Shown one piece after another: positions 2,073-64,000 of a stretch of DNA of 64,000 bases. The stretch covers positions 1 to 64,000 of the forward strand of contig NIVC01002238.1 of NCBI GenBank assembly GCA_002269645.1, in the 5' to 3' direction. Positions within the stretch are counted from its first letter, which is position 1, and each line of letters starts with the position of its first letter. The position numbers and the translations under genes were made by a program. The notes under the pieces are model-generated. The model was not told the origin of the DNA and did not search any database. It saw only the letters and a list, made by a program, of their open reading frames with translations. Source of the stretch: Macrostomum lignano. Its lineage: Eukaryota.

Positions 2073-5000
2073 CTGAAAAGTTAATGGAGTGCCAGCCATG
2101 AATTAGCTGACAGAGTAGGTAGGGTAGCTGACAGAGGAGGTAGGGTAGCTGACGGAGTAGGTAGGGTAGCTGACAGAGTAGGTAGGGTAGCTGACAGAGG
2201 AGGTTGGGTAGCTGACAGAGTAGGTAGGGTAGCTGACAGAGGAGGTTGGGTAGCTGACAGAGTAGGTAGGGTAGCTGACAGAGGAGGTAGGGTAGCTGAC
2301 AGAGTAGGTAGGGTAGCTGACAGAGGAGGTAGGGTAGCTGACAGAGTACGTAGAGTAGCTGACAGAGTAGGTAGGGTAGCTGACAGAGGAGGTAGGGTAG
2401 CTGATAGAGGAGGTAGGGTAGCTGATAGAGGAGGTAGGGTAGCTGATAGAGGAGGTAGGGTAGCTGACAGGAGGTAGGGTAGCTGACAGAGTAGGTAGGG
2501 TAGCTGACGGAGTAGGTAGGGTAGCTGACAGAGGAGGTAGGGTAGCTGACGGAGTAGGTAGGGTAGCTGACAGAGGAGGTAGGGTAGCTGACAGAGTAGG
2601 TAGGCTAGCTGACAGAGTAGGTAGGGTAGCTGACAGAGTAGGTAGGGTAGCTGACAGAGTAGGTAGGGTAGCTGACAGAAAAGACAGTGAAATGTGATTA
2701 GCAGTGAAGGTGTGACAGCGGGCAGACACACAATCGAGCAACAGGTACAACAACATAGGATCACATAATCCAACTCCCCTAAAGACAATCTGGAATAACT
2801 CACAGGCTGGCTGTAGGCAAACAGCGTCGGCTGCTGCATCTGGCCGGCATAGGCTGGCGCGAACGGGAGCAGGTAGCTCGGCGTTGCCGCTGCCGCCGAT
2901 GCACCGGGCGGTTGAGGCTGCGCCGCCTGCTGCTGCACAGGCTGCTGATTCGTCGGCTGAGTCAGCGTCGAGGTACTGGCCGGAGTCAGGCGCAGGGAAG
3001 GCAGCGTCGCTGGAACAACCGACGGCGCGCTGGACGGCGCCGACACCGACACCGTTGCAGTTGACAGGCCGGCAAAATTCGGTGCACCGGCAGGTCCGGA
3101 CGGCGTCAGCATCGGGGAGGACAGATGCGGCAGGCCAGCCGCAGATGCGGGCATCGAGCCGGCCGCATTGGAATTCACGACCGACGATGAGGCAGCAGCG
3201 ACCGCGGCGGCGGAGGCTGCTTGAGCCGCTGCGGCAGCTTCCTCTGCCTCCTTTGCCAGGGCCTGCTGTCTGCAATGGTTGGAGCACCGGATTTGTAAAA
3301 ACTGCAGAGTATTCGCCTCAGTCTTGAAATCTCAGCCGAGCAACTGAGGATCTGGGAGGCTGGCCCAGCAACTGAGGATCTGGGAGGCTGGCCCAGCAAC
3401 TGAGCATCTGGGAGGCTGGCCCAGCAACTGGGGATCTGGGAGGCTGGCCCAGCGACTGAGGATCTGGGAGGCTGGCCCAGCAACTGGGGATCTGGGAGGC
3501 TGGCCCAGCAACTGGGGATCTGGGAGGCTGGCCCAGCAACTGGGGATCTGGGAGGCTGGCCCAGCAACTGGGGATCTGGGAGGCTGGCCCAGCAACTGGG
3601 GATCTGGGAGGCTGGCCCAGCAACTGGGGATCTGGGGGCTGGCCCAGCAACTGAGGATTTGGGGGCTGGCCCAGCAACTAAGGATCAATGAGCTTGAAAC
3701 GCCAGTTAAGCGCTACCCAGAGTCCTTACCTAGCCTCCTCAGCTTCGCGAGCCTGGGCGGCTTTGGCTGCGGCTTCCTCCTTAGCGGCCCGCTCCTCTTG
3801 TCGACGGCGCTCCGCTTCTTCCTGACGCCGACGGGCCTTAGCGGCGCGGCCGATGGCGGGCGGCTCGGACAGCTCAATCAGTTTAGTGGTGCGCTGCTGC
3901 GGCGGCTGCTGCGATAGCTGATGATGCAGGCCGTGCGACCCGCCGACCGGCGTCCCCAGCGGGTGAACGGATGAGCGCTGCCTGGCCAGCAGCTGCAGCG
4001 GCGGCTGGCTCTGCACGGGGCGGCGCATCTGCTCGGTTTGGGCGCATTGGGAGGAAATCAGTGAAAAATGTGATCCATATGTATCTGAGGTGATCCATAG
4101 GTATCTGGGGTGATCCATAAGGTATCTGGGGTGATCCATAAGGTATCTGAGGTGATCCATAAGGTATCTGGGGTGATCCATATGTATCTGAGGTGATCCA
4201 TAAGGTATCTGGGCTGATTCATGAAGTATCTGAGGTGATTCATAGGGTATCTGGGGTGATCCATGAGTATCTGGGGGTCCATAGGGTATCTGGGCTGATT
4301 CATAAGGTATCTGAGGTGATGCATGGGTATCTGGGGTAATCCATAGGTATCTGGGGTGATCCATAGGTATCTGGGGTAATCCATAGGTATCTGGGGTAAT
4401 CCATAGGGTATCTGGGGTAATCCATAGGTATCTGGGGTAATCCATAGGTATCTGGGGTGATCCATAGGTATCTGGGGTAATCCATAGGTATCTGAGGTGA
4501 TCCATAGGTATCTGGGGTAATCCATAGGTATCTGGGGTAATCCATAGGGTATCTGGGGTAATCCATAGGTATCTGGGGTAATCCATAGGTATCTGGGGTG
4601 ATCCATAGGTATCTGGGGTAATCCATAGGTATCTGGGGTAATCCATAGGGTATCTGGGGTAATCCATAGGTATCTGGGGTAATCCATAGGTATCTGGGGT
4701 GATCCATAGGTATCTGGGGTAATCCATAGGTATCTGGGGTAATCCATAGGTATCTGGGGTAATCCATAGGTATCTGGGGTAATCCATAGGTTTCTGGGGT
4801 AATCCATAGGTATCTGGGGTAATCCATAGGTATCTGGGGTAATCCATAGGTATCTGGGGTGATCCATAGGTATCTGGGGTGATCCATAGGTATCTGGGGT
4901 AATCCATAGGTATCTGGGGTAATCCATAGGGTATCTGGGGTGATCCATAGGTATCTAGGGTAATCCATAGGTATCTGGGGTGATCCATAGGTATCTGGGG

Positions 5001-10764: not shown

Positions 10765-41456
<30,692 letters not shown>

Positions 41457-42617
41457 TAATTAGAACACTAATTAGGTGACGAGGCAGTCTTTTTACTCCC
41501 GCCTTTTACCCATTGAGTTGTTCGATTCAGGTAGCTATTTTGAAGGCCCAGAAAATAGAGTTCAATATCAAACCATCTTGTTAAACAGGGCCAGTATTCT
41601 ATTCTACCGATACCGTTTAGTATTTGTTTTTTGCGCTGCCTATTTTTGGCGGGAATTCAAATTAAACTCGATTTCCTAAGATTGTGTACAAGTATTAGGT
41701 GGCGTGGAATGGCATTGTTGTGTACTACTGGTTGTGCTATTATATATTGAAATTCTTAGCTATTTGAAATTAATGTTGCCTTCGGTCTTGGCCTATGCTT
41801 CTGCTTCCACGAATTGGCTTTCTTTCGAATTGCCGCAGCTTCCTCCATCCGCCCCCTGCCACCTGGCGTTGAGCTTTTTCTGTTTAAAATTTCAACTCTC
41901 CAAAGTTTCTATAATAAATTTATCGGTCACTTTCGCTGTTACTACTTACTTTCAAAATCATTTCAGTAGTAAAAGACGACAGCAATAGCGAATTATAATA
42001 TAATAACTGTTTTGAATGATACTACTGATTTGAAAAGTAGTTGAATAGCGCATATGCAAGTGATCTATTTAGTCATTAGTGTCGGTAACGTGAAGTTACC
42101 AAATAGTGTTTATTTATTGTTATTTTGAGCTTCATTTCCAACCCCGCTTTCGGCTTAGCCTTGCCAGCTCTCACAGCCGCTGCCCGAGGCTTCTGTTTGA
42201 GCTTGTCCTGCTGTAAATAAACACTTCTCTCTGCATATTTCGCTGACTCTTTCAGCTTTCTCTGTGGTTTCGCCTGATAACTGATATTTTATTTTAACAA
42301 TATCGCTTTCGATTACTGCAATACAACCAAGCTGACAGTGCAACTCCTGTGCTTTATTGAATTCTGTTTTTTACTCTCTTTTTCTCACATTTACTCTTTA
42401 ATGTGACTGGGTCTCCTCTATCTGGCGGTGTCAAGCACTTTTTTAGACTTTGCTAAATATTTAATATATTATCATAAATAGATTGATTATTACTGATAGG
42501 ACTGAGTCTGTCTGCGCTTGGCCTGTCATAGATAGGGCGGCTAACCTTAAACATTTTTATACTGAACTGCTTCATGATGAGATCGGGTCCGCACTGCTGA
42601 GTTCTTTGTGTGCTGGG

Positions 42618-43492
42618 CTGCCCAGCAACTGAGGATCTGGGAGGCTGGCCCAGCGACTGAGGATCTGGGAGGCTGGCCCAGCAACTGAGGATCTGGGAGG
42701 CTGGCCCAGCGACTGAGGATCTGGGAGGCTGGCCCAGCAACTGAGGATCTGGGAGGCTGGCCCAGCAACTGAGGATCTGGGAGGCTGGCCTAGCAACTGA
42801 GGATCTGGGAGGCTGGCCTAGCAACTGGGGGTCTGGGAGGCTGGCCTAGCAACTGAGGGTCTGGGTGGATGGCCCAGCAACTGGGGATCTGGGAGGCTGG
42901 CCCAGCAACTGAGGATCTGGGAGGCTGGCCCAGCAACTGAGGATCTGGGAGGCTGGCCCAGCAACTGAGGATCTGGGAGGCTGGCCCAGCAACTGAGGAT
43001 CTGGGAGGCTGGCCTAGCAACTGAGGATCTGGGAGGCTGGCCTAGCAACTGGGGGTCTGGGAGGCTGGCCTAGCAACTGAGGATCTGGGAGGCTGGCCTA
43101 GCAACTGGGGGTCTGGGAGGCTGGCCTAGCAACTGAGGGTCTGGGTGGATGGCCCAGCAACTGGGGATCTGGGAGGCTGGCCCAGCAACTGAGGATCTGG
43201 GAGGCTGGCCCAGCAACTGAGGATCTGGGAGGCTGGCCCAGCAACTGAAGATCTGGTAGGCTGGCCCAGCAACTGAGGATCTGGGAGGCTGGCCCAGCAA
43301 CTGAGGATCTGGGTGGATGGCCCAGCAACTGAGGATCTGGGAGGCTAGGCTGGCCCAGCAACTGAGGATCTGGGTGGATGGCCCGGCAACTGAGGATCTG
43401 GGTGAATGGCCTAGCCAATGGGGATCTGGAATGCTGGCCCAGCAACTGAGGATCTGGGTGGATGGCCTAGCCAATGGGGATCTAGAAGGCTG
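42618..43492 (+). repeat. 28-bp dispersed minisatellite, locus 3 (intergenic, between convergent SBF and ABCG)
   Basis: About 30 copies, degenerating at the 3' end. Confidence 0.95.
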
Positions 43493-43829
43493 GAAGAGGG
43501 GAATGAATAACAAATATGATTCGTTAAACATTGATCGTCTTTACTTCTTGTTCTCCATTCAGAGATGATTATGAGTACTTATGAGCATTTGCTGCCTCAT
43601 CAGCTGATGTTATACATTTATGTCAGTATCGTGTCATAGTGCAGTATCGTGTATAACGAACGATTTCTACGAGTCTTCTGGAAAACTTGTTGGACTGAAC
43701 CATGTGTTCATGCATGTAGAATACGGTGCATGGCTGATTTTTAAGCGAGCTTAAATCCTGCTTTAATACAAAAACAATAGCTGACAATAAGAACGTACAA
43801 ATTAAAATGCACCCAGAATAGACAGTTCG

Positions 43830-44369: not shown

Positions 44370-47300
44370 CTGTTTAATAAATTTGATGATGGCGAGATTG
44401 GTATAAAATTATTTGCAGAAGCTAGGGTTGCGGGCAACCTGGAGCAACGCCTTCAGGCGACATCGCCCCACAACCAGCTCTGAAAGCAGTTCTACTCATT
44501 CCGCTGACTCCTACAGCTCACCGAAAATCGTCCGTCCTCTCCAGTATGATTATGAGACCGAAGTGATAGCAGTAGCGAATATAGGACAGGTATTTGGCCC
44601 AGTCGAACCAGAACGGGATGCTTTTAGTGAAGAATCCGCCTGTGCAATGTTGGTTGCGGGTTTTGCTTCTAATCTGGGAGGCTGCGGGTCATTGCCAACT
44701 GGAGTGCGCTAACTGACACAATTTTGAGAAACCTACTCACCAGTCAGAAAGCAGAAAATCATGTAGATGAAGGCAAAGGTCATGTTCGTTCTCGGATTGG
44801 TGGACAGGAGGCTGAAGACGATTCCGATGCCCTACAGTGAATTTGGCGACAGGAAAACCTTTTTCACTACTGAGGAGTAGACTGTAAGTGAATTTCTCAG
44901 CTTTGAAGTGTCCGTCTTTGTGTCTGTCTTTGTGTCTCATTGTCTCGGTGTCTTTGTGTTTGTCTTTGTGTCTCATTATCTCGGTGTCTTTGTGTTTGTG
45001 TCTTTGTCTGTGTCTTTGTGTCTCAGTGTCAGTGTCTTTGTCCTTGTGTCTCGGTATCTTTGTGTCTCGGTGTCTTTGTGTCTCGGTGTCTTTGTGTCTC
45101 GGTGTCTTTGTGTCTCGGTGTCTTTGTGTCTCGGTGTCTTTGTGTCTCGGTGTCTTTGGGTCTCGGTGTCTTTGTGTCTCGGTGTCTTTGTGTCTCGGTG
45201 TCTTTGTGTCTCGGTGTCTTTGTGTCTCGGTGTCTTTGTGTCTCGGTGTCTTTGTGTCTCGGTGTCTTTGGGTCTCGGTGTCTTTGTGTCTCGGTGTCTT
45301 TGTGTCTCGGTGTCTTTGTGTCTCGGTGTCTTTGTGTCTCGGTGTCTTTGTGTCTCGGTGTCTTTGTGTCTCGGTGTCTTTGTGTCTCGGTGTCTTTGTG
45401 TCTCGGTGTCTTTGTGTCTCGGTGTCTTTGTGTCTCGGTGTCTTTGGGTCTCGGTGTCTTTGTGTCTCGGTGTCTTTGTGTCTCGGTGTCTTTGTGTCTC
45501 GGTGTCTTTGTGTCTCGGTGTCTTTGTGTCTCGGTGTCTTTGTGTCTCGGTGTCTTTGTGTCTCGGTGTCTTTGTGTCTCGGTGTCTTTGTGTCTCGGTG
45601 TCTTTGTGTCTCGGTGTCTTTGTGTCTCGGTGTCTTTGTGTCTCGGTGTCTTTGTGTCTCGGTGTCTTTGTGTCTCGGTGTCTTTGTGTCTCGGTGTCTT
45701 TGTGTCTCGGTGTCTTTGTGTCTCGGTGTCTTTGTGTCTCGGTGTCTTTGTGTCTCGGTGTCTTTGTGTCTCGGTGTCTTTCGGTGTCTTTGTTTCGCGG
45801 TGGCTGTGTTTTTGTGTCTATGTGTCTTTGTGTTTCAGTGTCTCGGTATCTTTGTGTTTGTGTCTTTGTGTCTCATTGTCTCGGTGTCTGTGTTTGTGTA
45901 CCCGTGCCTCGGTATATTCAGTTAGTTCGCAAGGGGAGGGGTGTGGGCGCTGCCGCAGATCAAGGCCACTGTCAGCGCGGACCCAGCGAGAAGGCAAATC
46001 AGTCGATGCCCTGACTTTCTAATCGCCAGACATGTACAACTCTCTGTGCCTTGAGGGGTTGGCCCTCTCGGACACGAATCGCACGACAAGAGCCTCGACC
46101 TATTCGAACCCAGAGACTTTGACACGCTGGCCGCTGAGCTACCCCGCCAGCCGGAGCTCACCTGCGAGGCCAGGCTATTCAAGGTGATGACCACTAGGAA
46201 GGCCGCGAAAGCGCCAAAGTCGGCAAAGCCAACGCACCAATAAGCTGGCGCGATGATGAAGATGGGCACCACCAGCAGCAGCGGGATCTCCACCACCATC
46301 TTGGCCAGGTAGTAAGCGCCAATGCGGTACATGCCGGACTTGCGCTCGTGCCTCACTATGGCCAAGTCGGCGTAGACTGCCAGGAATGCGAACGGGGAGC
46401 GATAATGGAGGAAAAGGTCACACGAGGTCGCGCGGGATATCTTGGGAATAGAGAAGAATGCTATTTTTATAGAACTGACTTACACGTCATTATGGCTTCG
46501 AAGAACGGTGCAAAAGTTACGTAGCTTGTTAGGAAGAAAATCTGGAGTTTAAGTAAAATTTCAGCAGATGTACATGATTATTATTAAATAGCGATCCCGG
46601 CTTAAATTCCAACGTTGAAGCTCCAATCCCAGACTCCAGATTCAAATCCCAGATCCCAAATCCTATGAAAAGTCCGATTTCGGATCCCAGATCCCAGATC
46701 TCCCACTAAAAGTCAGATCCCAAATCTGAAATCCCTGATCCCCCATTAAAATTCAGATCCCAGATCCCAAATTCCCCAACAGAAGTTAGATCCCAAATCC
46801 CTGAACCCAAATCCTACAAAAGAAGTCAAATCCCAGATCCCCCACTAGAAGTCAGATCCCAGATCCCAAATCCCCCACTAGAAGTCGGATCCCAGATCCC
46901 CCACTAGAAGTCAGATCCCAAATCCCAAATCCTCACTAAAAGTCAGATCCCAGATCCCCCACTAGAAGTCAGATCCCAGATCCTCCACTAGAAGTCAGAT
47001 CCCAAATCCTCCACTAGAAGTCAGATCCCAAATCCTCCACTAGAAGTCAGATCCCAGATCCCCCACTAGAAGTCAGATCTCAAATCCCCCACTAGAAGTC
47101 AGATCCCAGATCCCAAATCCTCCATTAGAAGTCAGATCCCAGATCCCCCACTAGAAGTCAGATCCCAGATCCCAGATCTCCCACTAGAAGTCAGATCCCA
47201 GATCCCCCACTAGAAGTCAAATCCCGTTAACGGCTCACCGCAGAAATAAAATCGGCAATGTTATTCTCTGTCTTGGCCACCTGGAACCACAGCACGCTAA

Positions 47301-50195
47301 CAATGAAGGCCACAAAGGCGGTCTGTACCAGCACCTGCACAGACAGGATGGCTTCCCGGGAAACCAGGAAGCCGCGATAGCTCAGCGCTAGGAATTGAGT
47401 CCACCAGCTGACTTCATGCACCAGGTGAACGCCTTCAGAGTCGTCCTGCAGTTTTGCCGCCGCCGCCTGCGGAGAGAAATCCGGACTGGTGAACCGGATG
47501 CGCACCGAGCCCTCGTCCAGACCTGCCAATCCGTTCTGCCTGGAACCGGCATCGGCCTGGTAGGACAGGTTCAGGTGCACCTGGGAAGCGCTGGCCGATG
47601 CCAGCTGCTGCTGTTCCTGCTTGGCCCGCTCCGCGAACTGCCTGCCGTTCTCAAGGATGTGCGCCTTGTGCTGGGAGCTCTCCTTCACCACCTCCACTGC
47701 GGGTTCAAGATGCTCGATTGAGTGCTAACTGACACTCAGTTTGGCAACCCACCCTTGACAACCCCTGACATCCGGTTAGGTAAATCTAAGTACACGTGAC
47801 AGTTTCTCGCCCTCTCCTGCTCCCAAAAGCAGACAACCTGGTGACAGCTAATTAATTATGCAATGCTAATTAGAGATCGCGCATAAACTCACGCATGAAG
47901 TCGGCCGCATTCCAGTGCTTGTGGAACGGCACTCCGATGCCCTCAAAGTACTCCACCATCAGCTCCCGCCTACCCGAGTAGGCGATCTGCCCGTCTGCCA
48001 GCAGGAGCAGTTCGTGAAACTCGTGAAACGTCTGCGACGACGGCTGGTGAATACTGGTGACCACGATGCTGCTCTGCTCAACCACCCAGCGGCCAAGGAT
48101 CTCCATCAGTTTGAGCGCTAGGCTGGAGTCCAAGCCGGAGGTCGGCTCGTCCAGCAGTAGCACCTTGGGATTGCGCAGCAACTCGCAGGCGATGTTTGCT
48201 CGCTTTTTCTCACCGCCTGAGAGGCCCTGATCTGACATGCCGCCGATCTCTGCGGGGGATATGGGAAAGGGCGTCACTAAGACTACCAAGGTCAGTGCCC
48301 TTGGAGATTCCTTTGCATTTCTATTTTTAGCTCAATTTGACTCTTTAAGTTATCGGCTAACGTGACACTTAGCGAGACTTCACTTTCCCCGAAACTTGAC
48401 TTGGTCACCCAGAAATTAATCGTTCTCCCAATAAACTCTGCTAGTTAGACATCGCGGACAGCCTCACTTGTATCGAGGCACTTAGTCAACTGCAGTAGTT
48501 CAACGACTTCGTTAACTCGTTTCTCCTTGTCTTTGGCGGTCATTGAGCTGGGCAGCTTCACCTGGGAGAAAAACTGAAATCAGACAAGGGTAACGAAAAG
48601 TGATTTAGGCAATCACTAATCAATGTTCGAATTTCAGGTGTTTATCTCTAAACAGAGATCTCATCATTTAAGCATTAATTCCCAATTAGAGATCCCATTA
48701 GCCAGGTATAAATCACTACGAGTAATTAGACCTAATACCTAATTAGAGATCCCCATCATCAAGGTATTAATACCTAATTAGAGATCCCATCATCCAGGTA
48801 TTAATACCTAATTAGAGATCCCATCATCCAGGTATTGATCCCGAATTAGAGATCCCATAATATCGACAGTTGAACAAACCCAAAGAGTCTGCTTGAGTGT
48901 GAGCTGACTAAAAAAGACGTCCTCCTGAGTAACGTAGCCAAAGCTTTTCCTCATCCGGGAAGTGACTTTTCGATTATTGAGCAGAATTTCACCGTCCATG
49001 GTTGAGGAGGGCGGCCTCCTGCCGCAGATGAGGTTCATGAGGCTGGTCTTGCCGGAGCCTGCATGGGGATTCGTTTTTTATTGAGAAATTAATTTAGTTA
49101 CTGTTGAAGTTTTTGCCATGCTACTTAGTTACTTAGCGTATATTTTATTGATCCTGGTCTTGGACGTGGTCCCCCCGTGGTCCGTCGGTTGATACGCGAT
49201 ATTCTCACGTGTGATCTTCATTAGACTGGTATTCTCACGTGTGATCTTCTCTAGACTGGTATTCTCACGTGTGATCTCTAGACTGGTACTCTCACGTGTG
49301 ATCTTCTCTAGACTGGTATTCTCACGTGTGATCTTCTCTAGACTGCATGGTATTCTCACATGTGATCTTCTCTAGACTGGTATTCTCACTTGTGATCTTT
49401 TCTAGACTGGTATTCTCACGTGTGATCTTCTCTAGACTGGTATTCTCACGTGTGATCTTCTCTAGACTGGTATTCTCACGTGTGATCTTCTCTAGACTGG
49501 TATTCTCACTTGTGATCTTTTCTAGACTGGTATTCTCACGTGTGATCTTCTCTAGACTGGTATTCTCACTTGTGATCTTCTCTAGACTGGTATTCTCAAC
49601 ATTTGATCTTCTCTAGACTGGTATTCTCACATGTGATCTTCTCTAGACTGGTATTCTCACATGTGATCTTCTCTAGACTGGTATTCTCAACATGTGATCT
49701 TCTCTAGACTGGTATTCTCACGTGTGATCTTCATTAGACTGGTATTCTCATGTGTGATAATCTCTGGATTGATATTACTCAGGTGTGATCTCTAGACTGG
49801 TATTCTCACATCTGATCTTCTCTAGACTGGTATTCTCACGCGTGATCTTCTCTGGAGTTATATTCACAGGTGTGATAATCTCTGGACTGATATTCACAGG
49901 TGTGATAATCTCTGCACTGATATTCTCAGGTGTGATTATCTCTGGACTGATATTCGCAGGTGTGATCAGTTTCTAAGCTTGCTTATGTTAATTCTGTAAA
50001 TTAGCATTGGATTTTAAAGATAATAACAATTCAGTCTCACTAACCACTGGGTCCCATAACGGCCAGCATAGATCCAGACTTGGCCGTCAGGTGTACATTG
50101 TGCAGAATCTGCCGTCCACCCTCCACAGTCAGATTGACTCCGCGCACAGTGAGAACTTGTTGCTGTTGCTGCTGCTGCAAGGTTTCTTGCGTCAT
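44159..50195 (-). CDS. ABCG: ABCG (white-like) half transporter; complement(join(44159..44369,44522..44639,44741..44831,46162..46440,47239..47696,47893..48249,48468..48573,48880..49058,50045..50195)), about 649 aa
   Basis: Walker A GPSGSGKTS across exons 1-2, Q-loop GYVTQED, signature LSGGEKKR, Walker [14 protein letters not shown]-loop SIHQP; TM domain with [16 protein letters not shown] and [19 protein letters not shown]. Phases consistent; the exon 6 acceptor (46440 vs 46460) is the least certain. Confidence 0.92.
44522..44639 (-). CDS. ABCG: ABCG exon 8 ([22 protein letters not shown])
   Basis: GCACAG|GC; CG|GTGAGC. Confidence 0.9.
44741..44831 (-). CDS. ABCG: ABCG exon 7 ([19 protein letters not shown])
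   Basis: CTGTAG|GGC; G|GTGAGT. Confidence 0.88.
44910..45900. repeat. 16-bp minisatellite (TCTCGGTGTCTTTGTG) in ABCG intron 6
   Basis: About 45 near-perfect copies plus degenerate flanks. Confidence 0.96.
46162..46440 (-). CDS. ABCG: ABCG exon 6
   Basis: TM2-4; donor CAG|GTGAGC. Confidence 0.8.
46625..47225. repeat. 26/33-bp minisatellite (ACTAGAAGTCAGATCCCAGATCCCCC) in ABCG intron 5
   Basis: Built on an AGATCCC/AAATCCC heptamer. Confidence 0.92.
47239..47696 (-). CDS. ABCG: ABCG exon 5
   Basis: Linker, [15 protein letters not shown]1. Confidence 0.9.
47893..48249 (-). CDS. ABCG: ABCG exon 4
   Basis: Signature, Walker B, H-loop. Confidence 0.95.
48468..48573 (-). CDS. ABCG: ABCG exon 3
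   Basis: [25 protein letters not shown]. Confidence 0.9.
48680..48862. repeat. ~34-bp repeat (TAATTAGAGATCCCATCATCCAGGTATTAATACC) in ABCG intron 2
   Basis: About 5 copies. Confidence 0.85.
48880..49058 (-). CDS. ABCG: ABCG exon 2
   Basis: [16 protein letters not shown]. Confidence 0.92.
49195..49970. repeat. 30-bp minisatellite (GTATTCTCACGTGTGATCTTCTCTAGACTG) in ABCG intron 1
   Basis: About 26 copies. Confidence 0.95.
50045..50195 (-). CDS. ABCG: ABCG exon 1 ([30 protein letters not shown])
   Basis: ATG at 50195; G|GTTAGT donor, phase 1. Confidence 0.88.
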
Positions 50196-51904
50196 TTTTA
50201 ATCGTAATAGCGGCAGATTAACAAGTGAATTCTATTTAGTCTCTATGCCCTTTTATATTCTCCGTTTGACCTTGGCAGTTCTTTTTATAAAAAAATAGGG
50301 TGTATTCTGAGGTTGGTGTCAGAGGAATGAATTAATTTGCTTGCGTCAAGCTAAAGAACGTTGGTTGCGACAATATTGTGCAATGATTTTATTCACACTC
50401 GGCAGACAATGCAAAATAGGGATTGCCCTTCTCCTGCCCACTGAGTCAGTGCAGTCTAGTTGTTTTCTTTGCATAAACAGGCTTGCGCGGCCATCCATCC
50501 TTATCAAGACAATGTACACTGGTGAATGTACATAGGCTTCGACGAGGGGCGGTCGGTTGGGGAAGAGAAGGGAAGGAAAGGAGAGGGTTTAAAGGACACG
50601 ACGAGAGATGGACCTATTTTTGTCTACTTGAGCGGGCAGAGGGCTCGCAGTGCGTTATCTTAGACTTAGACTGTAAGATTAATAAGACTGTAAGACTTAG
50701 ACGTTATCTTGAACTTGACCAATTGCGTGCGTATTTACTACTCTATAACTTTATGACGGGTAACACGGGTGAAATTGTGTAAATGGCTACGCTATATGGT
50801 GAAAGATAATTAGTCATTCATTAATTTATTGAACTTGCTTGAACTGAACTAAGCAAAGTAGTGCAGCCCGCGGGCAGAGTCATTAATAGCGTAGGCAAGT
50901 CGAACAGTAGGGCCAGGAGTTGATTAACTGTGGCAGCTCAGTGTACGCATACTGATAATACGTACATAAAATATTGTAGATAACAAACTAGCTTCAAGCC
51001 ATCAAGCTACTATTAGTAGAACAGTGCAGAAATAAAATACATTCAGTCGGATAATAAAAATACAGCATTATTTTTCATATTCCTTTTTGCCGGCACTTGT
51101 ACAACTACAACCCAAAACTGACTGTTTCGGTTCTTAAAAAGGTTCTTTTATTAAGGGCTTCGATAAAAAATCCCCGCAGGAGATTTCCTTGATGGGGATT
51201 TTCCTAAAGGGATTTCCCCACAGGGATTTCCCCACATGGATCTCCCGACAGGGATTTCAAGCACGAACTGCACAACTGAGTGGTTGCTCTGAAATCTAAA
51301 TATACTTTATTAGTCTAAAAATCAATTGAATTGAATTGGATTGAATGTATGCAAGTCAAATAGAAATATGCGAGATATTTTAATCACTAATCCCAAACTA
51401 TAACAAAAATGTTTTGACTCACGCAATCCGTCCGGCGAGAGAAGCTCCAGTGGGAAATTTCGCTGAAAGGAGAAATGAACTCAAATTATTAGGCTTTGAG
51501 TTACGTTCAAACTCCCAACAGGCACTGAAGTCAAGTGTTTGAATGGATTGCATCATTCACAAGCAAAGTGCAAGCTGCATAATTAAGGCAACTGTGATAA
51601 ATAAAATTTCAATAAAATATGGAAATTTCTCCCAGTTATGCAGCTCTCCCAAGCTGGGGCTAATGAAGCTGCTCTCCATCCCGCTCTCCAACCCGCACAA
51701 TGACAGCTGCGTGAATGCCTGACTGACCAGAGCGCAGGCTGGGGATCGATATGACCGCTCAGTACCTTCCCCATCTATCCTTCCAGGACCCGGTCAATCA
51801 GCATTTAGATAAAAGAGCTCTTATCTTGTTTAGACAGAATTTCGTATTAGTTAGGATGAGCGCAATGCACTGAATGAAGTTCGATTCAGTGCCTACTGTA
51901 CTCC

Positions 51905-53493: not shown

Positions 53494-53844
53494 TCATCCA
53501 ATCGGGCAGGCTCTGTAGTCATTCAGTCGGCACCTCTTGCTGAACCGCGGCAGAATCAGCGGCTGTTGCGGCGGCTGCGGCTGCACCTCCTCGAAGCCAA
53601 AGTCGGTACCAAGCAGCGGCTCTTCTGGCCAGTCAGGCGGCGGAGGCGGAGGCTGCACTAGTTCGTCATCTTCAACGCCTGCCAGTTGGGTTAGAGATCT
53701 TATTGCAGATCTTTTGAATATCTAAAGGTGCTCTAAAAAGTACTCACCGAATTCCTGGGGCCATCGTAGCGGGCCGGCCATAGCGGCTCCAGCAACACAG
53801 AGCAGCGCGGTTAGCAACAGGGCGGCTGGCTGATGCCTCATCAT
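53494..53844 (-). CDS. Secreted neuropeptide precursor, vasopressin/oxytocin-like tail; complement(join(53494..53678,53748..53844)), 93 aa; predicted mature peptide CRLNDYRACPIG
   Basis: MMRHQPAALLLTALLCVAGAAMA signal peptide, acidic Pro-rich spacer, KR site, 2-Cys peptide, C-terminal Gly, TGA. 69-nt intron with G|GTGAGT donor, CTAAC branch point and GCAG acceptor; AATAAA on minus strand at 53069-53074. Confidence 0.88.
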
Positions 53845-54024: not shown

Positions 54025-54506
<482 letters not shown>

Positions 54507-54796: not shown

Positions 54797-57700
54797 ATGC
54801 GAGCAGAAGACGCCGGCCTCGCCGCCGCCTGCGCCTTCGCTGCTGCGGTCCTGCTGGCCGCCGCGGCCGCCGCTCTGTGGCTTCTCAGGCTTCGCCGACA
54901 ACGAAAGCCGACAGTCCACATCGGGGAGGCGTCAGCAGTGACGACCGAAGTCGCCGGCCAGCTGGTGAAGCCGCAGCCGACGCCCTGCGTTGAGACCAGC
55001 ATCGCCGAGGTGCAGCCGGAGTCGCTCGCTGCTGTCGGTCCGTTTCAATTTGACTTCGACTTCGACCAGCTACAGCTTGGCAACCAGTTTCATTTGAATG
55101 TCATGGAGAGGCTGCAGCTTGTGCAGCCTGCGGATGGTGAGCAGCACCTGTGCCTTCTAGCACACCTGTCCCTTCTAGCACACCTGTCCCTTCTAGCACA
55201 CCTGTCCCTTCTAGCACACCTGTCCCTTCTAGCACACCTGTCCCTTCTAGCACACCTGTCCCTTCTAGCACACCTGTCCCTTCTAGCACACCTGTCCCTT
55301 CTAGCACACCTGTCCCTTCTAGCACAGCCTGTCCCTTCTAGCACACCTGTCCCTTCTAGCACACCTGTTCCTTCTAGCACACCTGTCCCTTCTAGCACAC
55401 CTGTCCCTTCTAGCACACCTGTCCCTTCTAGCACACCTGTCCCTTCTAGCACACCTGTCCCTTCTAGCACACCTGTCCCTTCTAGCACACCTGTCCCTTC
55501 TAGCACACCTGTCCCTTCTAGCACACCTGTCCCTTCTAGCACACCTGTCCCTTCTAGCACACCTTGCCCTTCTAGCACACCTGTCCCTTCTAGCACACCT
55601 GTCCCTTCTAGCACACCTTGTCCCTTCTAGCACACCCTGTCCCTTCTAGCACACCTTGTCCCTTCTAGCACACCTGTCCCTTCTAGCACACCTGTTCCTT
55701 CTAGCACACCTGTCCCTTCTAGCACACCTGTTCCTTCTAGCACACCTGTCCCTTCTAGCACACCTGTCCCCTCTAGCACACCTTGCCCTTCTAGCACACC
55801 TGTCCCTTCTAGCACACCTGTCCCTTCTAGCACACCTGTCCCCTCTAGCACACCTGTCCCTTCTAGCACACCCTGTCCCTTCTAGCGCACCCTGTCCGTT
55901 CTAGCGCACCATGTCCCTTCTAGCGCACCTGTTCCTTCTAGCACACCTGTCCCTTCTAGCACACCTGTCCGTTCTAGCACACCTTGCCCTTCTAGCACAC
56001 CCTGTTCCTTCTAGCACATCTTGCCCTTCTAGCACACCTGTCCCTTCTAGCACACCTTGCCCTTCTAGCACACCTGTCCCTTCTAGCACACCTGTCCCTT
56101 CTAGCACAGCCTGTCCCTTCTAGCACACCTGTCCCTTCTAGCACACCTGTTCCTTCTAGCACACCTGTCCCTTCTAGCACACCTGTCCCTTCTAGCACAC
56201 CTGTCCCTTCTAGCACACCTGTCCCTTCTAGCACACCTGTCCCTTCTAGCACACCTGTCCCCTCTAGCACACCTTGCCCTTCTAGCACACCTGTCCCTTC
56301 TAGCACACCTGTTCCTTCTAGCACACCTGTCCCTTCTAGCACACCTGTCCCTTCTAGCACATCTTGCCCTTCTAGCACACCTGTCCCTTCTAGCACATCT
56401 TGCCCTTCTAGCACACCTGTCCCTTCTAGCACATCTTGCCCTTCTAGCACACCTGTTCCTTCTAGCACACCTTGCCCTTCTAGCACACCTGTTCATTCTA
56501 GCACACCTGTTCCTTCTAGCACACCTGTTCCTTCTAGCACACCCTGTCCCTTCTAGCACACCTGTCCCTTCTAGCACACCTGTCCCTTCTAGCACACCTG
56601 TCCCTTCTAGCACACCTTGCCCTTCTAGCACACCTGTCCCTTCTAGCACACCTGTTCCTTCTAGCACACCTGTCCCTTCTAGCACACCTGTCCCTTCTAG
56701 CACATCTTGCCCTTCTAGCACACCTGTTCCTTCTAGCACACCTTGCCCTTCTAGCACACCTGTTCATTTTAGCACACCTGTTCCTTCTAGCACACCTTGC
56801 CCTTCTAGCACACCTGTTCATTCTAGCACACCTGTTCCTTCTAGCACACCTGTTCCTTCTAGCACACCCTGTCCCTTCTAGCACACCTGTCCCTTCTAGC
56901 ACACCTGTCCCTTCTAGCACACCTGTCCCTTCTAGCACACCTTGCCCTTCTAGCACACCTGTCCCTTCTAGCACACCTGTCCCTTCTAGCACACCTTGCC
57001 CTTCTAGCACACCCTGTTCCTTCTAATACACCTTAAAGTTCCTTAGAGTCTGCTAGCACTTCATCGGTGCCTTCTAACGGCCTGTTTTAGTCAACTGAGC
57101 ATGAACGCTTCACTTTTTCCGACCCCTATAGCGCCTTTGTGTATTTTTCTGCCAAATTTTTTCTTTCCTGCTTTCAAAGTTCGAACTAGCGGCTTCCCCT
57201 AGGCGAGCTATTTTGCCAAATTAAGTAGGCGGAACTCTTTCGAAACAGCCAATTAACCGCGTTGGAATGAGGGCCCGTCCGCGTACCTGTAAGCTAAGCC
57301 CCTGCCTTGACACGCATGAGCCACTCAGAGCTTGTTAAGACCCCGTATTGTTGGGTCCTTAATCAGGGGGCTATCAGTCAACTTATTATCTGGCTTAGTG
57401 AATGCGGTGCTACTACTGAAAATGGCTGCTTAGATAGTAGTGAGTACAGTTTTTTAAGCATTAGATAATTCGTAACTGAAGTTACAAAGCAAGATGTTCT
57501 GAATTTCATAAGTTAAATCCCCCATCAGACCAGGCTGGCTGCCATCCCACACCCATTCCCCAATCAGACCAGACTGGCTGCCATCCCACACCCATTCCCC
57601 AACCAGACCATACTGGCTGCCATCCCACACCCATTCCCCAGTCAGACCAGACTGGCTGCCATCCCACACCCATTCCCCAACCAGACCATACTGGCTGCCA

Positions 57701-60152: not shown

Positions 60153-60771
60153 ACCCATACAGTTGCTCCTAATAAAACACCACAGCTGTTATTGCACAAT
60201 AGAATAACTGACTAATTTTCCTTTCAGTTAAAATTTAAAAACACGAATCTTACTACTGATAAAGAAAACAAGCCTCTTTTTCAAGACATTTTGTTTCGAT
60301 ATTTTACAATCTGCAGAAAGTCAAAAACTCAGTTCCCTCTGTTTCTGACTGAGAAAAGCAATCACCAATCGGCAGAACTCCATGATTCACTCAAAAATAA
60401 TTGCCTCATCATTGTTACGCAATCAATTTGCCGCAATTTCAGCGCGGCACGCGGACTAAAAAGTGAGACAGACGACCGTGGCCGTCCATTTTGATTATGG
60501 AATTCGCTGTGGAGTTCGGGCGAGCGTAGCTGCTGGTGAGCAAGGCTTCCTTAGAGATTTCCGCGGGGCGTGCGGGCTCAGCTACTAATCTGTACTGACG
60601 TTTCTGTGGCGTTATTTGTGGAGCGCATCGCGAGCAATAATTCTCTGCCGCTCTCTCTCTCTCTCTCTCTGTGTGTGTCTAAATCTATCCATGAAAGTTT
60701 TGGCTGAAATGCTGTTTCTATTTACATATTTGACTGCCAAAGCAATTTTATTATTGGCGAGCTTCGCTGTG

Positions 60772-60965
60772 GCCCAGCAACTGAGGATCTGGGAGGCTTG
60801 CCCAGCAACTGAGGATCTGGGAGGCTGGCCCAACAACTGAGGATCTGGGAGGCTGGCCCAGCAACTGGGGATCTGTGAGGCTTGCCCAGCAACTGAGGAT
60901 CTGGGAGGCTTGCCTAGAAACTGAGGATCTGGGAGGCTGGCCCAACAACTGAGGATCTGGGAGGG
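60772..60965 (+). repeat. 28-bp dispersed minisatellite, locus 4
   Basis: About 7 copies, ending GGGAGGGTGGCGGTG. Confidence 0.93.
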
Positions 60966-61639
60966 TGGCGGTGTGAGACTGGGACAGCCCAGTCTAATGT
61001 AAATTAGCCTAAGGGAAAATGGCATTACAGTTTTAATCATTCTTATTCAAGTCGGCAAGACTCCAGTCCAAGATTTGCTCAAGGTTGTCTGTCCATCCGT
61101 CGCAGCCTTCTCATCTAAAATTCCCTTAGCTTTTTGCGGCAATTTAATTTAGCAAATTATTGAATCAGTTTATCGCTGCCGGCTCTTGCCACCCACCTCA
61201 GTGAGCTGAGCCGGCTGTGATCCTCGTGGGCGGTCGCTTCCTTCTCTTATGCAAATTTTATTGCACCGCAGTTCAGCCTCTCTGTGTATATATATATAGT
61301 CAGTCAGGGGACGGAAGAAAAGCCAGCCATGGTCTCAACAAGTGCCACTCTCTAACCATAGTATTGAGGCTGCTCGCTAAAAATGGGAAGTTTTTGTTGG
61401 GAAGGGATTATTAATGCTGCCGCCGCCACCCACCGCCCCGACAACGCGGTGACATGAAGCGTATGACTGGCTGACTTGGCAGGGTGTTCATCGATCCAAT
61501 CGGGGCCAGCCTCTTAGAGTACAATAGGGTTAAGAATGCATGGAAAAATGAAGAATGCCGCTGTAGCAGAAAGCCGATGATGGCTGGGGATGAAAGAAAG
61601 AGAAAACTGAAACTGTGGGACAGCGGAATGGAGAGATGA

Positions 61640-61967: not shown

Positions 61968-64000
61968 TTGACAGTAAACTGACAGTTAACAGAATGGACA
62001 GCAAATGGACAGCATATTGACAGTAAACTGACAGTGAATTGACAGTGAATTGACAGTAGATTGACAGTGAATTGACAGTAGATTGACTGTGAATTGACAG
62101 TAGATTGACAGTAGATTGACAGTGAATTGACAGTAGATTGACAGTAGATTGACAGTGAATTGACAGTAGATTGACAGTAGATTGACAGTGAATTGACAGT
62201 AGATTGACAGTGAATTGACAGTAGATTGACAGTAGATTGACAGTAGATTGACAGTAGATTGACAGTAGATTGACAGTGAATTGACAGTAGATTGACAGTA
62301 GATTGACAGTAGATTGACAGTAGATTGACAGTAGATTGACAGTGAATTGACAGTAGATTGACAGTAGATTGATAGTGAATTGACAGTGAATTGACAGTAG
62401 ATTGACAGTAGATTGACAGTGAATTGACAGTAGATTGACAGTAGATTGACAGTGAATTGACAGTAGATTGACAGTAGATTGATAGTGAATTGACAGTGAA
62501 TTGACAGTGAATTGACAGTAGATTGACAGTGAATTGACAGTAGATTGACAGTAGATTGACAGTGAATTGACAGTGAATTGACAGTAGATTGACAGTAGAT
62601 TGACAGTAGATTGACAGTGAATTGACAGTAGATTGACAGCATATTGACAGTAAACTGACAGTGAATTGACAGTAGATTGACAGTAGATTGACAGTAGATT
62701 GACAGTAGATTGACAGTGAATTGACAGTAGATTGACAGTAGATTGACAGTGAATTGACAGTAGATTGACAGTAGATTGATAGTGAATTGACAGTGAATTG
62801 ACAGTGAATTGACAGTAGATTGACAGTAGATTGACAGTAGATTGACAGTGAATTGACAGTAGATTGACAGTAGATTGACAGTGAATTGACAGTAGATTGA
62901 CAGTAGATTGACAGTAGATTGATAGTGAATTGACAGTGAATTGACAGTGAATTGACAGTAGATTGACAGTAGATTGACAGTGAATTGACAGTAGATTGAC
63001 AGTAGATTGATAGTGAATTGACAGTGAATTGACAGTGAATTGACAGTAGATTGACAGTGAATTGACAGTGAATTGACAGTAGATTGACAGTAGATTGACA
63101 GTAGATTGACAGTAGATTGACAGTGAATTGACAGTAGATTGACAGTAGATTGACAGTGAATTGACAGTGAATTGACAGTAGATTGACAGTAGATTGACAG
63201 TAGATTGACAGTGAATTGACAGTAGATTGACAGCATATTGACAGTAAACTGACAGTGAATTGACAGTAGATTGACAGTAGATTGACAGTAGATTGACAGT
63301 AGATTGACATGAATTGACAGTAGATTGACAGTAGATTGACAGTGAATTGACAGTGAATTGACAGTAGATTGACAGTAGATTGACAGTAGATTGACAGTAG
63401 ATTGACAGTGAATTGACAGTGAATTTACAGTAGATTGACAGTAGATTGACAGTAGATTGACAGTAGATTGACAGTGAATTGACAGTAGATTGACAGTAGA
63501 TTGACAGTGAATTGACAGTAGATTGACAGTAGATTGATAGTGAATTGACAGTGAATTGACAGTGAATTGACAGTAGATTGACAGTAGATTGACAGTGAAT
63601 TGACAGTAGATTGACAGTAGATTGATAGTGAATTGACAGTGAATTGACAGTGAATTGACAGTAGATTGACAGTGAATTGACAGTGAATTGACAGTAGATT
63701 GACAGTAGATTGACAGTAGATTGACAGTAGATTGACAGTGAATTGACAGTAGATTGACAGTAGATTGACAGTGAATTGACAGTGAATTGACAGTAGATTG
63801 ACAGTAGATTGACAGTAGATTGACAGTAGATTGACAGTGAATTGACAGTAGATTGACAGTAGATTGACAGTGAATTGACAGTGAATTGACAGTAGATTGA
63901 CAGTAGATTGACAGTAGATTGACAGTAGATTGACAGTGAATTGACAGTGAATTGACAGTAGATTGACAGTAGATTGACAGTAGATTGACAGTAGATTGAC
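61968..64000. repeat. 11-bp minisatellite, two interleaved variants (TTGACAGTAGA / TTGACAGTGAA), runs off the window
   Basis: About 185 copies. Confidence 0.97.

Follow-up and report, generated by a model that had tools for sequence, protein, structure and literature searches.

The minus strand of a 64,000-nt stretch of the Macrostomum lignano genome (assembly GCA_002269645.1, contig NIVC01002238.1, positions 1 to 64,000; this whole stretch is referred to as the window) carries, at 53844-53494, what on balance appears to be a genuine, transcribed two-exon gene for a secreted prepropeptide of 93 amino acids (aa). As read from the sequence, the predicted protein is built like a small prohormone and probably gives rise to an orphan, lineage-restricted cyclic peptide. 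Since the peptide belongs by sequence to none of the known families, it is best treated as an orphan of this kind; membership in the vasopressin/oxytocin (VP/OT) family, with which it shares a four-residue tail, was not supported.

The start codon was located at 53844-53842. The coding part of exon 1 (53844-53748, 97 nt, ATGATG...GAATTCG) encodes residues 1-32 and contributes the first base of the Gly33 codon. It is followed by a 69-nt phase-1 intron (53747-53679) starting with GTGAGT and ending with CAG (GTGAGTAC...CTGGCAG), and by exon 2 (53678-53494, 185 nt), which ends with a TGA stop codon (53496-53494). When the splicing was recomputed, the joined exons yielded a 282-nt coding sequence translating into MMRHQPAALLLTALLCVAGAAMAGPLRWPQEFGVEDDELVQPPPPPPDWPEEPLLGTDFGFEEVQPQPPQQPLILPRFSKRCRLNDYRACPIG. 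Stop codons in the same reading frame lie 5' of the ATG. The GC content of exon 1 and exon 2 (0.64 and 0.62, respectively) stands out from that of the intron (0.38) and the flanks (0.39), and GC content at the third codon positions (GC3) of the coding sequence is 0.67. In the mechanical list of open reading frames (ORFs) the gene appears merely as two fragments of 40 and 54 aa. The unspliced 54-aa exon-2 ORF gave no match when it was looked up in public assemblies.

An exact look-up identified the spliced product as the GenBank entry PAA59721.1 (BOX15_Mlig011818g2), annotated as "hypothetical protein" of M. lignano. Two more copies of the gene are annotated in the genome, PAA74047.1 (g3) and PAA70106.1 (g1). 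The GenBank annotation of GCA_002269645.1 is a genome-guided transcriptome, obtained with STAR, StringTie and TACO and combined with a mapped de novo assembly, in which ORFs were predicted by TransDecoder (PMC5730564). Since the annotation was built from RNA-seq assemblies, the intron is transcript-derived and does not represent an ab initio guess. In all three copies the gene spans 351 nt, has the same intron and is followed approximately 3.3 kb downstream by an ABCG transporter gene. The copies are ~97% identical in DNA sequence from the promoter through to the 3' flank, exons and intron included, and the intron is identical in all of them. This near-identity fits the recent duplication known for the M. 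lignano genome. The ORF is intact in every copy. Seven differences were found in the coding sequence, three non-synonymous (P6T, T12S and P46L) and four synonymous. P6T and T12S fall in the predicted signal peptide and P46L, the sole amino acid change in exon 2, in the spacer described below, whereas the final 130 nt of the coding sequence, including the dibasic site and the peptide, are invariant.

The first 23 residues (MMRHQPAALLLTALLCVAGAAMA, 53844-53776) are predicted, by rule-based judgement, to be a signal peptide. The N-terminus carries the basic residues Arg3 and His4, the hydrophobic core reaches a mean Kyte-Doolittle value of 2.76, and Ala occupies positions -3 and -1 of the putative cleavage site AMA|GP. 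The predicted signal peptide is confined to its own exon, the single intron lying just after it. Residues 24-79, encoded by the end of exon 1 (residues 24-32) and by 53678-53539 of exon 2, form an acidic propeptide spacer (pI ~4.05), and Pro makes up 26% of residues 24-81 and 18% of the whole protein. Lys80-Arg81 (53538-53533), the sole dibasic site in the 93-aa protein, is a predicted prohormone convertase site according to the general dibasic rule. Directly after it the protein ends with Cys-x7-Cys-Pro-Ile-Gly-stop, i.e. with the C-terminal peptide CRLNDYRACPIG (residues 82-93, 53532-53497), which is the same in all three copies. Of the three Cys residues in the protein, one belongs to the signal peptide, and the other two, Cys82 and Cys90, enclose seven residues of the terminal peptide. 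The generic features of a prohormone are present: a predicted signal peptide, a dibasic site preceding the peptide and a C-terminal Gly. The protein is short, rich in Pro and without alignment depth; outside the nine-residue ring, disorder is expected.

A cyclic-peptide motif by itself would lack significance: the looser pattern [KR][KR]-C-x(3-10)-C...stop is encountered three times when all six frames of the window are read. What places the gene beyond chance is the annotated, transcript-derived protein, the GC contrast of the exons, the in-frame stop codons upstream and the structure kept in three copies.

Most of this anatomy had been proposed in an earlier note on the same DNA, made from the sequence without database searches. 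Its two-exon gene proved correct to the base, the recomputed 93-aa product being identical to PAA59721.1, and the signal peptide with cleavage at AMA|GP, the acidic, Pro-rich spacer and the Lys-Arg followed by peptide codons at 53497-53532 were all borne out. Its reading that the terminal Gly could serve to make an Ile-amide is likewise supported, and its assignment to a flatworm agrees with the exact protein annotated in M. lignano. The note had also described the gene as hidden and missed by the ORF track. The latter is true in the sense that the list holds only the two fragments, but the gene is not hidden: an identical protein was already in GenBank, as one of three annotated copies, so that the gene is best described as annotated but uncharacterised.

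For the maturation of the product the following route can be proposed. Signal peptidase would take off residues 1-23, and a disulfide between Cys82 and Cys90 would be made in the endoplasmic reticulum. Cleavage by a prohormone convertase after Lys80-Arg81 would then free the C-terminal 12-mer from the acidic, Pro-rich spacer, and peptidylglycine alpha-amidating monooxygenase (PAM) would use Gly93 to leave an Ile-amide. The product, c[CRLNDYRAC]PI-NH2, would have 11 residues, a nine-membered ring and a net charge of about +2; for this cyclic amide an [M+H]+ of 1320.630 is predicted, and for the cyclic acid that retains Gly93 one of 1378.635. Once released, the peptide would serve in signalling between cells, most probably through a G-protein-coupled receptor. 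All steps past translation we infer from the general rules of the regulated pathway.

Several observations weigh against the gene encoding a signalling prohormone. Homologues were sought in 5.8 billion clusters by a word-seeded search, which returned a single cluster, and in 1.84 billion representative proteins by full HMMER, and no orthologue outside M. lignano was found in either search. The gene identifier was not present in the searchable supplements of PMC5816591, PMC7336406, PMC12896417 and PMC5977470, although these files are perhaps incomplete or use other identifiers; nor did "Mlig011818" match anything in a full-text literature search, and the peptide string was not found in the searchable literature. 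The ORF is a TransDecoder call on a transcript and its translation is predicted. As the three copies are ~97% alike even in the flanks and the intron, the three non-synonymous and four synonymous changes are uninformative on selection. Finally, short secreted proteins specific to the M. lignano lineage may also be products of glands or components of the seminal fluid.

Three candidate relatives that came up in the searches were rejected. A Pro-rich dinoflagellate protein matched by HMMER was a false positive. The UniProt entries A0A1I8FR66 and A0A1I8FLP7, both from M. lignano, are not independent homologues; they are apparently frameshifted or fused models, distinct from the GenBank annotation and attributed to the older ML2 assembly, and for neither is there a nucleotide record. 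A0A1I8FLP7 is wrong in running from the second exon of the peptide gene into the ABCG transporter.

As a tentative proposal, the gene may be the founder of a new family of cyclic amidated neuropeptides that is restricted to macrostomids and has a receptor of its own; this is likelier than an origin as an offshoot of the VP/OT lineage. The earlier note had left the choice between a VP/OT-type hormone and a new cyclic peptide family, and the second alternative is the one that survives. A parallel is offered by the lineage-restricted planarian 'spp/npp' prohormones (Collins et al. 2010, PMC2953531). Like the protein described here, these precursors are short and secreted and lack homologues beyond the flatworms, and they were recognised by a signal peptide, basic sites and an amidation Gly. 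They differ in being backed by peptidomics and in situ hybridisation; the present gene is known from genome and transcript sequences, and its protein showed no similarity to any database protein outside M. lignano.

By analogy, the architecture of the precursor would work like that of somatostatin, allatostatin-C (AstC), urotensin-II (UII), MCH or contryphan-type precursors, unlike that of vasopressin/oxytocin. In cone-snail contryphan precursors a signal peptide and a pro-region precede a short peptide with one disulfide, which forms the extreme C-terminus and ends with Gly-stop for amidation. This shared plan is one argument for a rather unlikely alternative, namely that the gene encodes a secreted non-neuronal product, whether of a gland or of seminal-fluid, adhesive, antimicrobial or defensive nature. 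Either the cyclic C-terminal peptide or the entire pro-protein would then have its effect externally or on the mating partner. Contryphans, however, belong to gastropod venom and have a shorter ring with typical Pro and Trp residues, and the M. lignano gene has neither sequence similarity to them nor a venom context. A non-neuronal role would also suit a small, secreted, lineage-restricted protein without homologues, a description typical of the fast-evolving reproductive and gland proteins of Macrostomum that are a theme of PMC7336406 and PMC5977470. On the other hand, the gene is missing from the putative seminal-fluid transcripts and from the other searchable supplement lists (subject to the possible incompleteness or differing identifiers mentioned above), and it is rather in peptides of the regulated pathway that one typically sees a lone dibasic site abutting a Cys-loop that carries an amidation Gly.

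It is improbable that the transcript is real and the ORF non-functional, i.e. that TransDecoder picked a short ORF from a transcript that is non-coding or present at a low level, the prohormone features being coincidental. Such an artefact would account for the missing homologues and for an ORF known from transcript-based prediction; the three chance occurrences of the [KR][KR]-C...C...stop pattern in the window, and copies too alike to reveal selection, also leave room for it. Several independent features would have to coincide, however: a start codon after in-frame stops, a signal peptide with an exon to itself, an intron in phase 1, exons that alone are GC-rich and codon-like in composition (GC3 0.67), and a single Lys-Arg, two Cys and a terminal Gly in an ORF that is intact in each of the three copies.

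Little speaks for a highly diverged member of the somatostatin/AstC/UII/MCH group of C-terminal cyclic neuropeptides, which we consider quite improbable. The likeness lies in the plan of the precursor, which in these families comprises a signal peptide, a non-conserved spacer, a basic site and a single-disulfide peptide at or near the C-terminus; in the M. lignano protein the dibasic site and the looped peptide form the last residues. The rings of these peptides enclose four (UII), six (AstC), eight (MCH) or ten (SS14) residues, and the seven of the M. lignano peptide fit none of them. The core motifs of the group are FWK[TY] in somatostatin and UII, C-[YF]-F-N-P-I-S-C in AstC and C-M-L-G-R-V-Y-R-P-C in MCH. 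With one gap the peptide could be aligned to human MCH as C-x-L-x-x-Y-R-x-C, but this alignment was rejected after shuffling showed it to be within chance. The alignments to MCH, AstC, SS14 and UII were all within shuffle expectation (p = 0.11-0.66). The Pfam families of somatostatin, Pro-MCH and urotensin gave no match at E<=10, and the FWK and the Arg/Tyr (MCH) pharmacophores are missing from the peptide. Moreover, peptides of these families are mostly not amidated, so the predicted amidation would be unusual among them. In the Aplysia UII precursor the cyclic peptide is located in the C-terminal part (...CLWKVCPAAPWLIS), with a Pro right after the second Cys (PMC3493602).

The earlier note had linked the peptide to the VP/OT hormones, and this link did not hold. 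It would require a divergent VP/OT paralogue whose ring expanded from four to seven internal residues, which moved to the C-terminal end of its precursor, lost the Gly-Lys-Arg site and neurophysin, and acts on VP/OT-type receptors. The two systems have in common a secreted precursor giving rise to a disulfide-looped peptide and a C-P-I-G tail that agrees with the C-P-x-G of the family and is the same as in mesotocin, isotocin and cephalotocin. In a panel of cyclic peptides CPIG was indeed the best local match. However, 8.9% of the shuffled peptides (Cys positions fixed) matched some member of the panel as well as the real peptide matched mesotocin. A hidden Markov model (HMM) of the hormone module, with 12 columns covering the nonapeptide plus Gly-Lys-Arg, likewise aligned CPIG, and as few as 0.6% of the shuffled tails scored as high, but the alignment comprised four residues only and amounted to 3.0-3.7 bits. 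With Pro accounting for 18% of the protein and 26% of residues 24-81, a Cys-Pro is not unlikely. Since the protein is so rich in Pro, Aplysia UII also has a Cys-Pro and 8.9% of the shuffles were as good, the tail is weak evidence.

VP/OT precursors were collected with a Lymnaea conopressin query, which reached gastropods only; 16 of the sequences were aligned and used for a profile search. This search yielded 306 VP/OT precursors. PF00184 was found on all of the best 120 of the 306, and none of these best 120 was an M. lignano sequence. In all 16 aligned precursors a CFIRNCP-x-GGKR module directly follows the signal peptide. Among 121 true precursors collected here, C-x4-C-P-x-G followed by [GK][KR] was found in 118, the exceptions being two N-terminally truncated models and a C-x4-C-A-R-G from Saccoglossus; none had a larger ring. 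The M. lignano peptide, with seven residues in its ring, lacks the Asn at position 5, and instead of following the signal peptide it forms the C-terminal end, preceded by Lys-Arg. In place of the Gly-Lys-Arg site it has Gly and then the stop codon; this Gly would be consumed by amidation, leaving the amide on Ile, whereas in VP/OT peptides the corresponding Gly is itself the amidated residue. VP/OT precursors have ~16 Cys residues after the signal peptide, and only two follow it here. The absence of neurophysin, which the note had also claimed, was confirmed: neither PF00184 nor any other hormone family matched at E<=10, the sole Pfam match being a meaningless one between the signal peptide and a phage family. 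hhalign against the conopressin precursors gave a probability of 0.5%.

Other genes of M. lignano have been reported as VP/vasotocin precursors (PAA85176.1, PAA50340.1, PAA46766.1 and PAA87831.1), and a clear VP/OT receptor was not found in this species (Kobayashi et al. 2022, PMC8896804). The accessions of these four differ from those of the three copies of the peptide gene. In pro-platytocin most residues match the neurohypophysial motif (PMC8896804), and the extended platytocin to which the note had likened the peptide could not be verified. In sum, the peptide differs from the VP/OT family in ring size, precursor position, the Gly-Lys-Arg site and neurophysin and agrees with it in the four-residue tail, so that a CRLNDYRACPI-amide derived in macrostomids from the VP/OT gene lineage, by expansion of the ring, shedding of neurophysin and a move to the C-terminus, is highly improbable.

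If the orphan peptide is made and bioactive, it would add to M. lignano a cyclic amidated signalling peptide without known relatives, and would give a further example of neuropeptides arising anew within a flatworm lineage. M. lignano is an early-branching flatworm model in which RNA interference and transgenesis are available, so that function and receptor are directly testable. If the peptide were a VP/OT offshoot after all, VP/OT-like signalling could exist without neurophysin; given a likeness of four residues and the separate canonical precursor genes reported, the gene has no present bearing on the origin of VP/OT signalling. The analysis removes an unsupported VP/OT assignment and supplies exact coordinates and predicted masses for the peptide.

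Around the gene, motifs were found whose positions are consistent with a small RNA polymerase II gene. A TATA-like TTTAAAT (53944-53938, minus strand, as are the following) lies 94 nt 5' of the ATG and may mark the core promoter. A candidate CCAAT box (53994-53990) and a candidate E-box, CAGCTG (53987-53982), are the same in all three copies, as is nearly all of the flanking DNA. An ATTAAA at 53407-53402, 87 nt past the stop codon, is a candidate polyadenylation signal; the canonical AATAAA does not occur between 53300 and 54060. The output of a bacterial promoter/terminator scan was disregarded as irrelevant to a eukaryotic gene. A compound (CTAA)n/(AGTC)n microsatellite of ~480 nt (54026-54506) ends approximately 30 nt upstream of the CCAAT box; it is found in all three copies with differing lengths.

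Two further genes could be recognised elsewhere in the window by their Pfam domains. The ABCG-type half-transporter gene (ABC_tran plus ABC2_membrane) that neighbours the peptide gene at a downstream distance of 3.3 kb occupies ~45900-50200 on the minus strand. The plus strand carries a large SBF/MTMR5/13-like gene at 13613-41456, with a uDENN domain at 13613-14140, a myotubularin-related phosphatase domain at 36924-37427 and 38646-39500, and a weak C1 match and a PH domain at 39906-41456. The introns of this gene are full of minisatellites. A 277-aa ORF on the plus strand (54797-55630) has a transmembrane-like N-terminus followed by repeat-encoded sequence and is a candidate gene only; its match to Pfam DUF963 is driven by the repeats. 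A 188-aa ORF on the minus strand (1533-2099) contains poly-Gln tracts, and its C-terminal part is non-repetitive; it had no Pfam match and is probably an exon of some gene.

Tandem Repeats Finder gave 113 rows for the window, which is extremely rich in minisatellites (e.g. 14180-17741, 55140-57033 and 61997-64000), among them a 48-nt unit repeated 75 times, an 18-nt unit repeated 104 times and an 11-nt unit repeated 182 times that runs off the end. In-frame repeats are all that many of the long 'ORFs' of the mechanical list consist of. A 28-nt unit (~GGCTGGCCCAGCAACTGAGGATCTGGGA) forms separate tandem arrays at 3335-3686, 31234-31473, 42616-43493 and 60770-60969, flanking several of the genes, and the dispersal of these four arrays suggests a dispersed satellite or a repeat borne by a mobile element.

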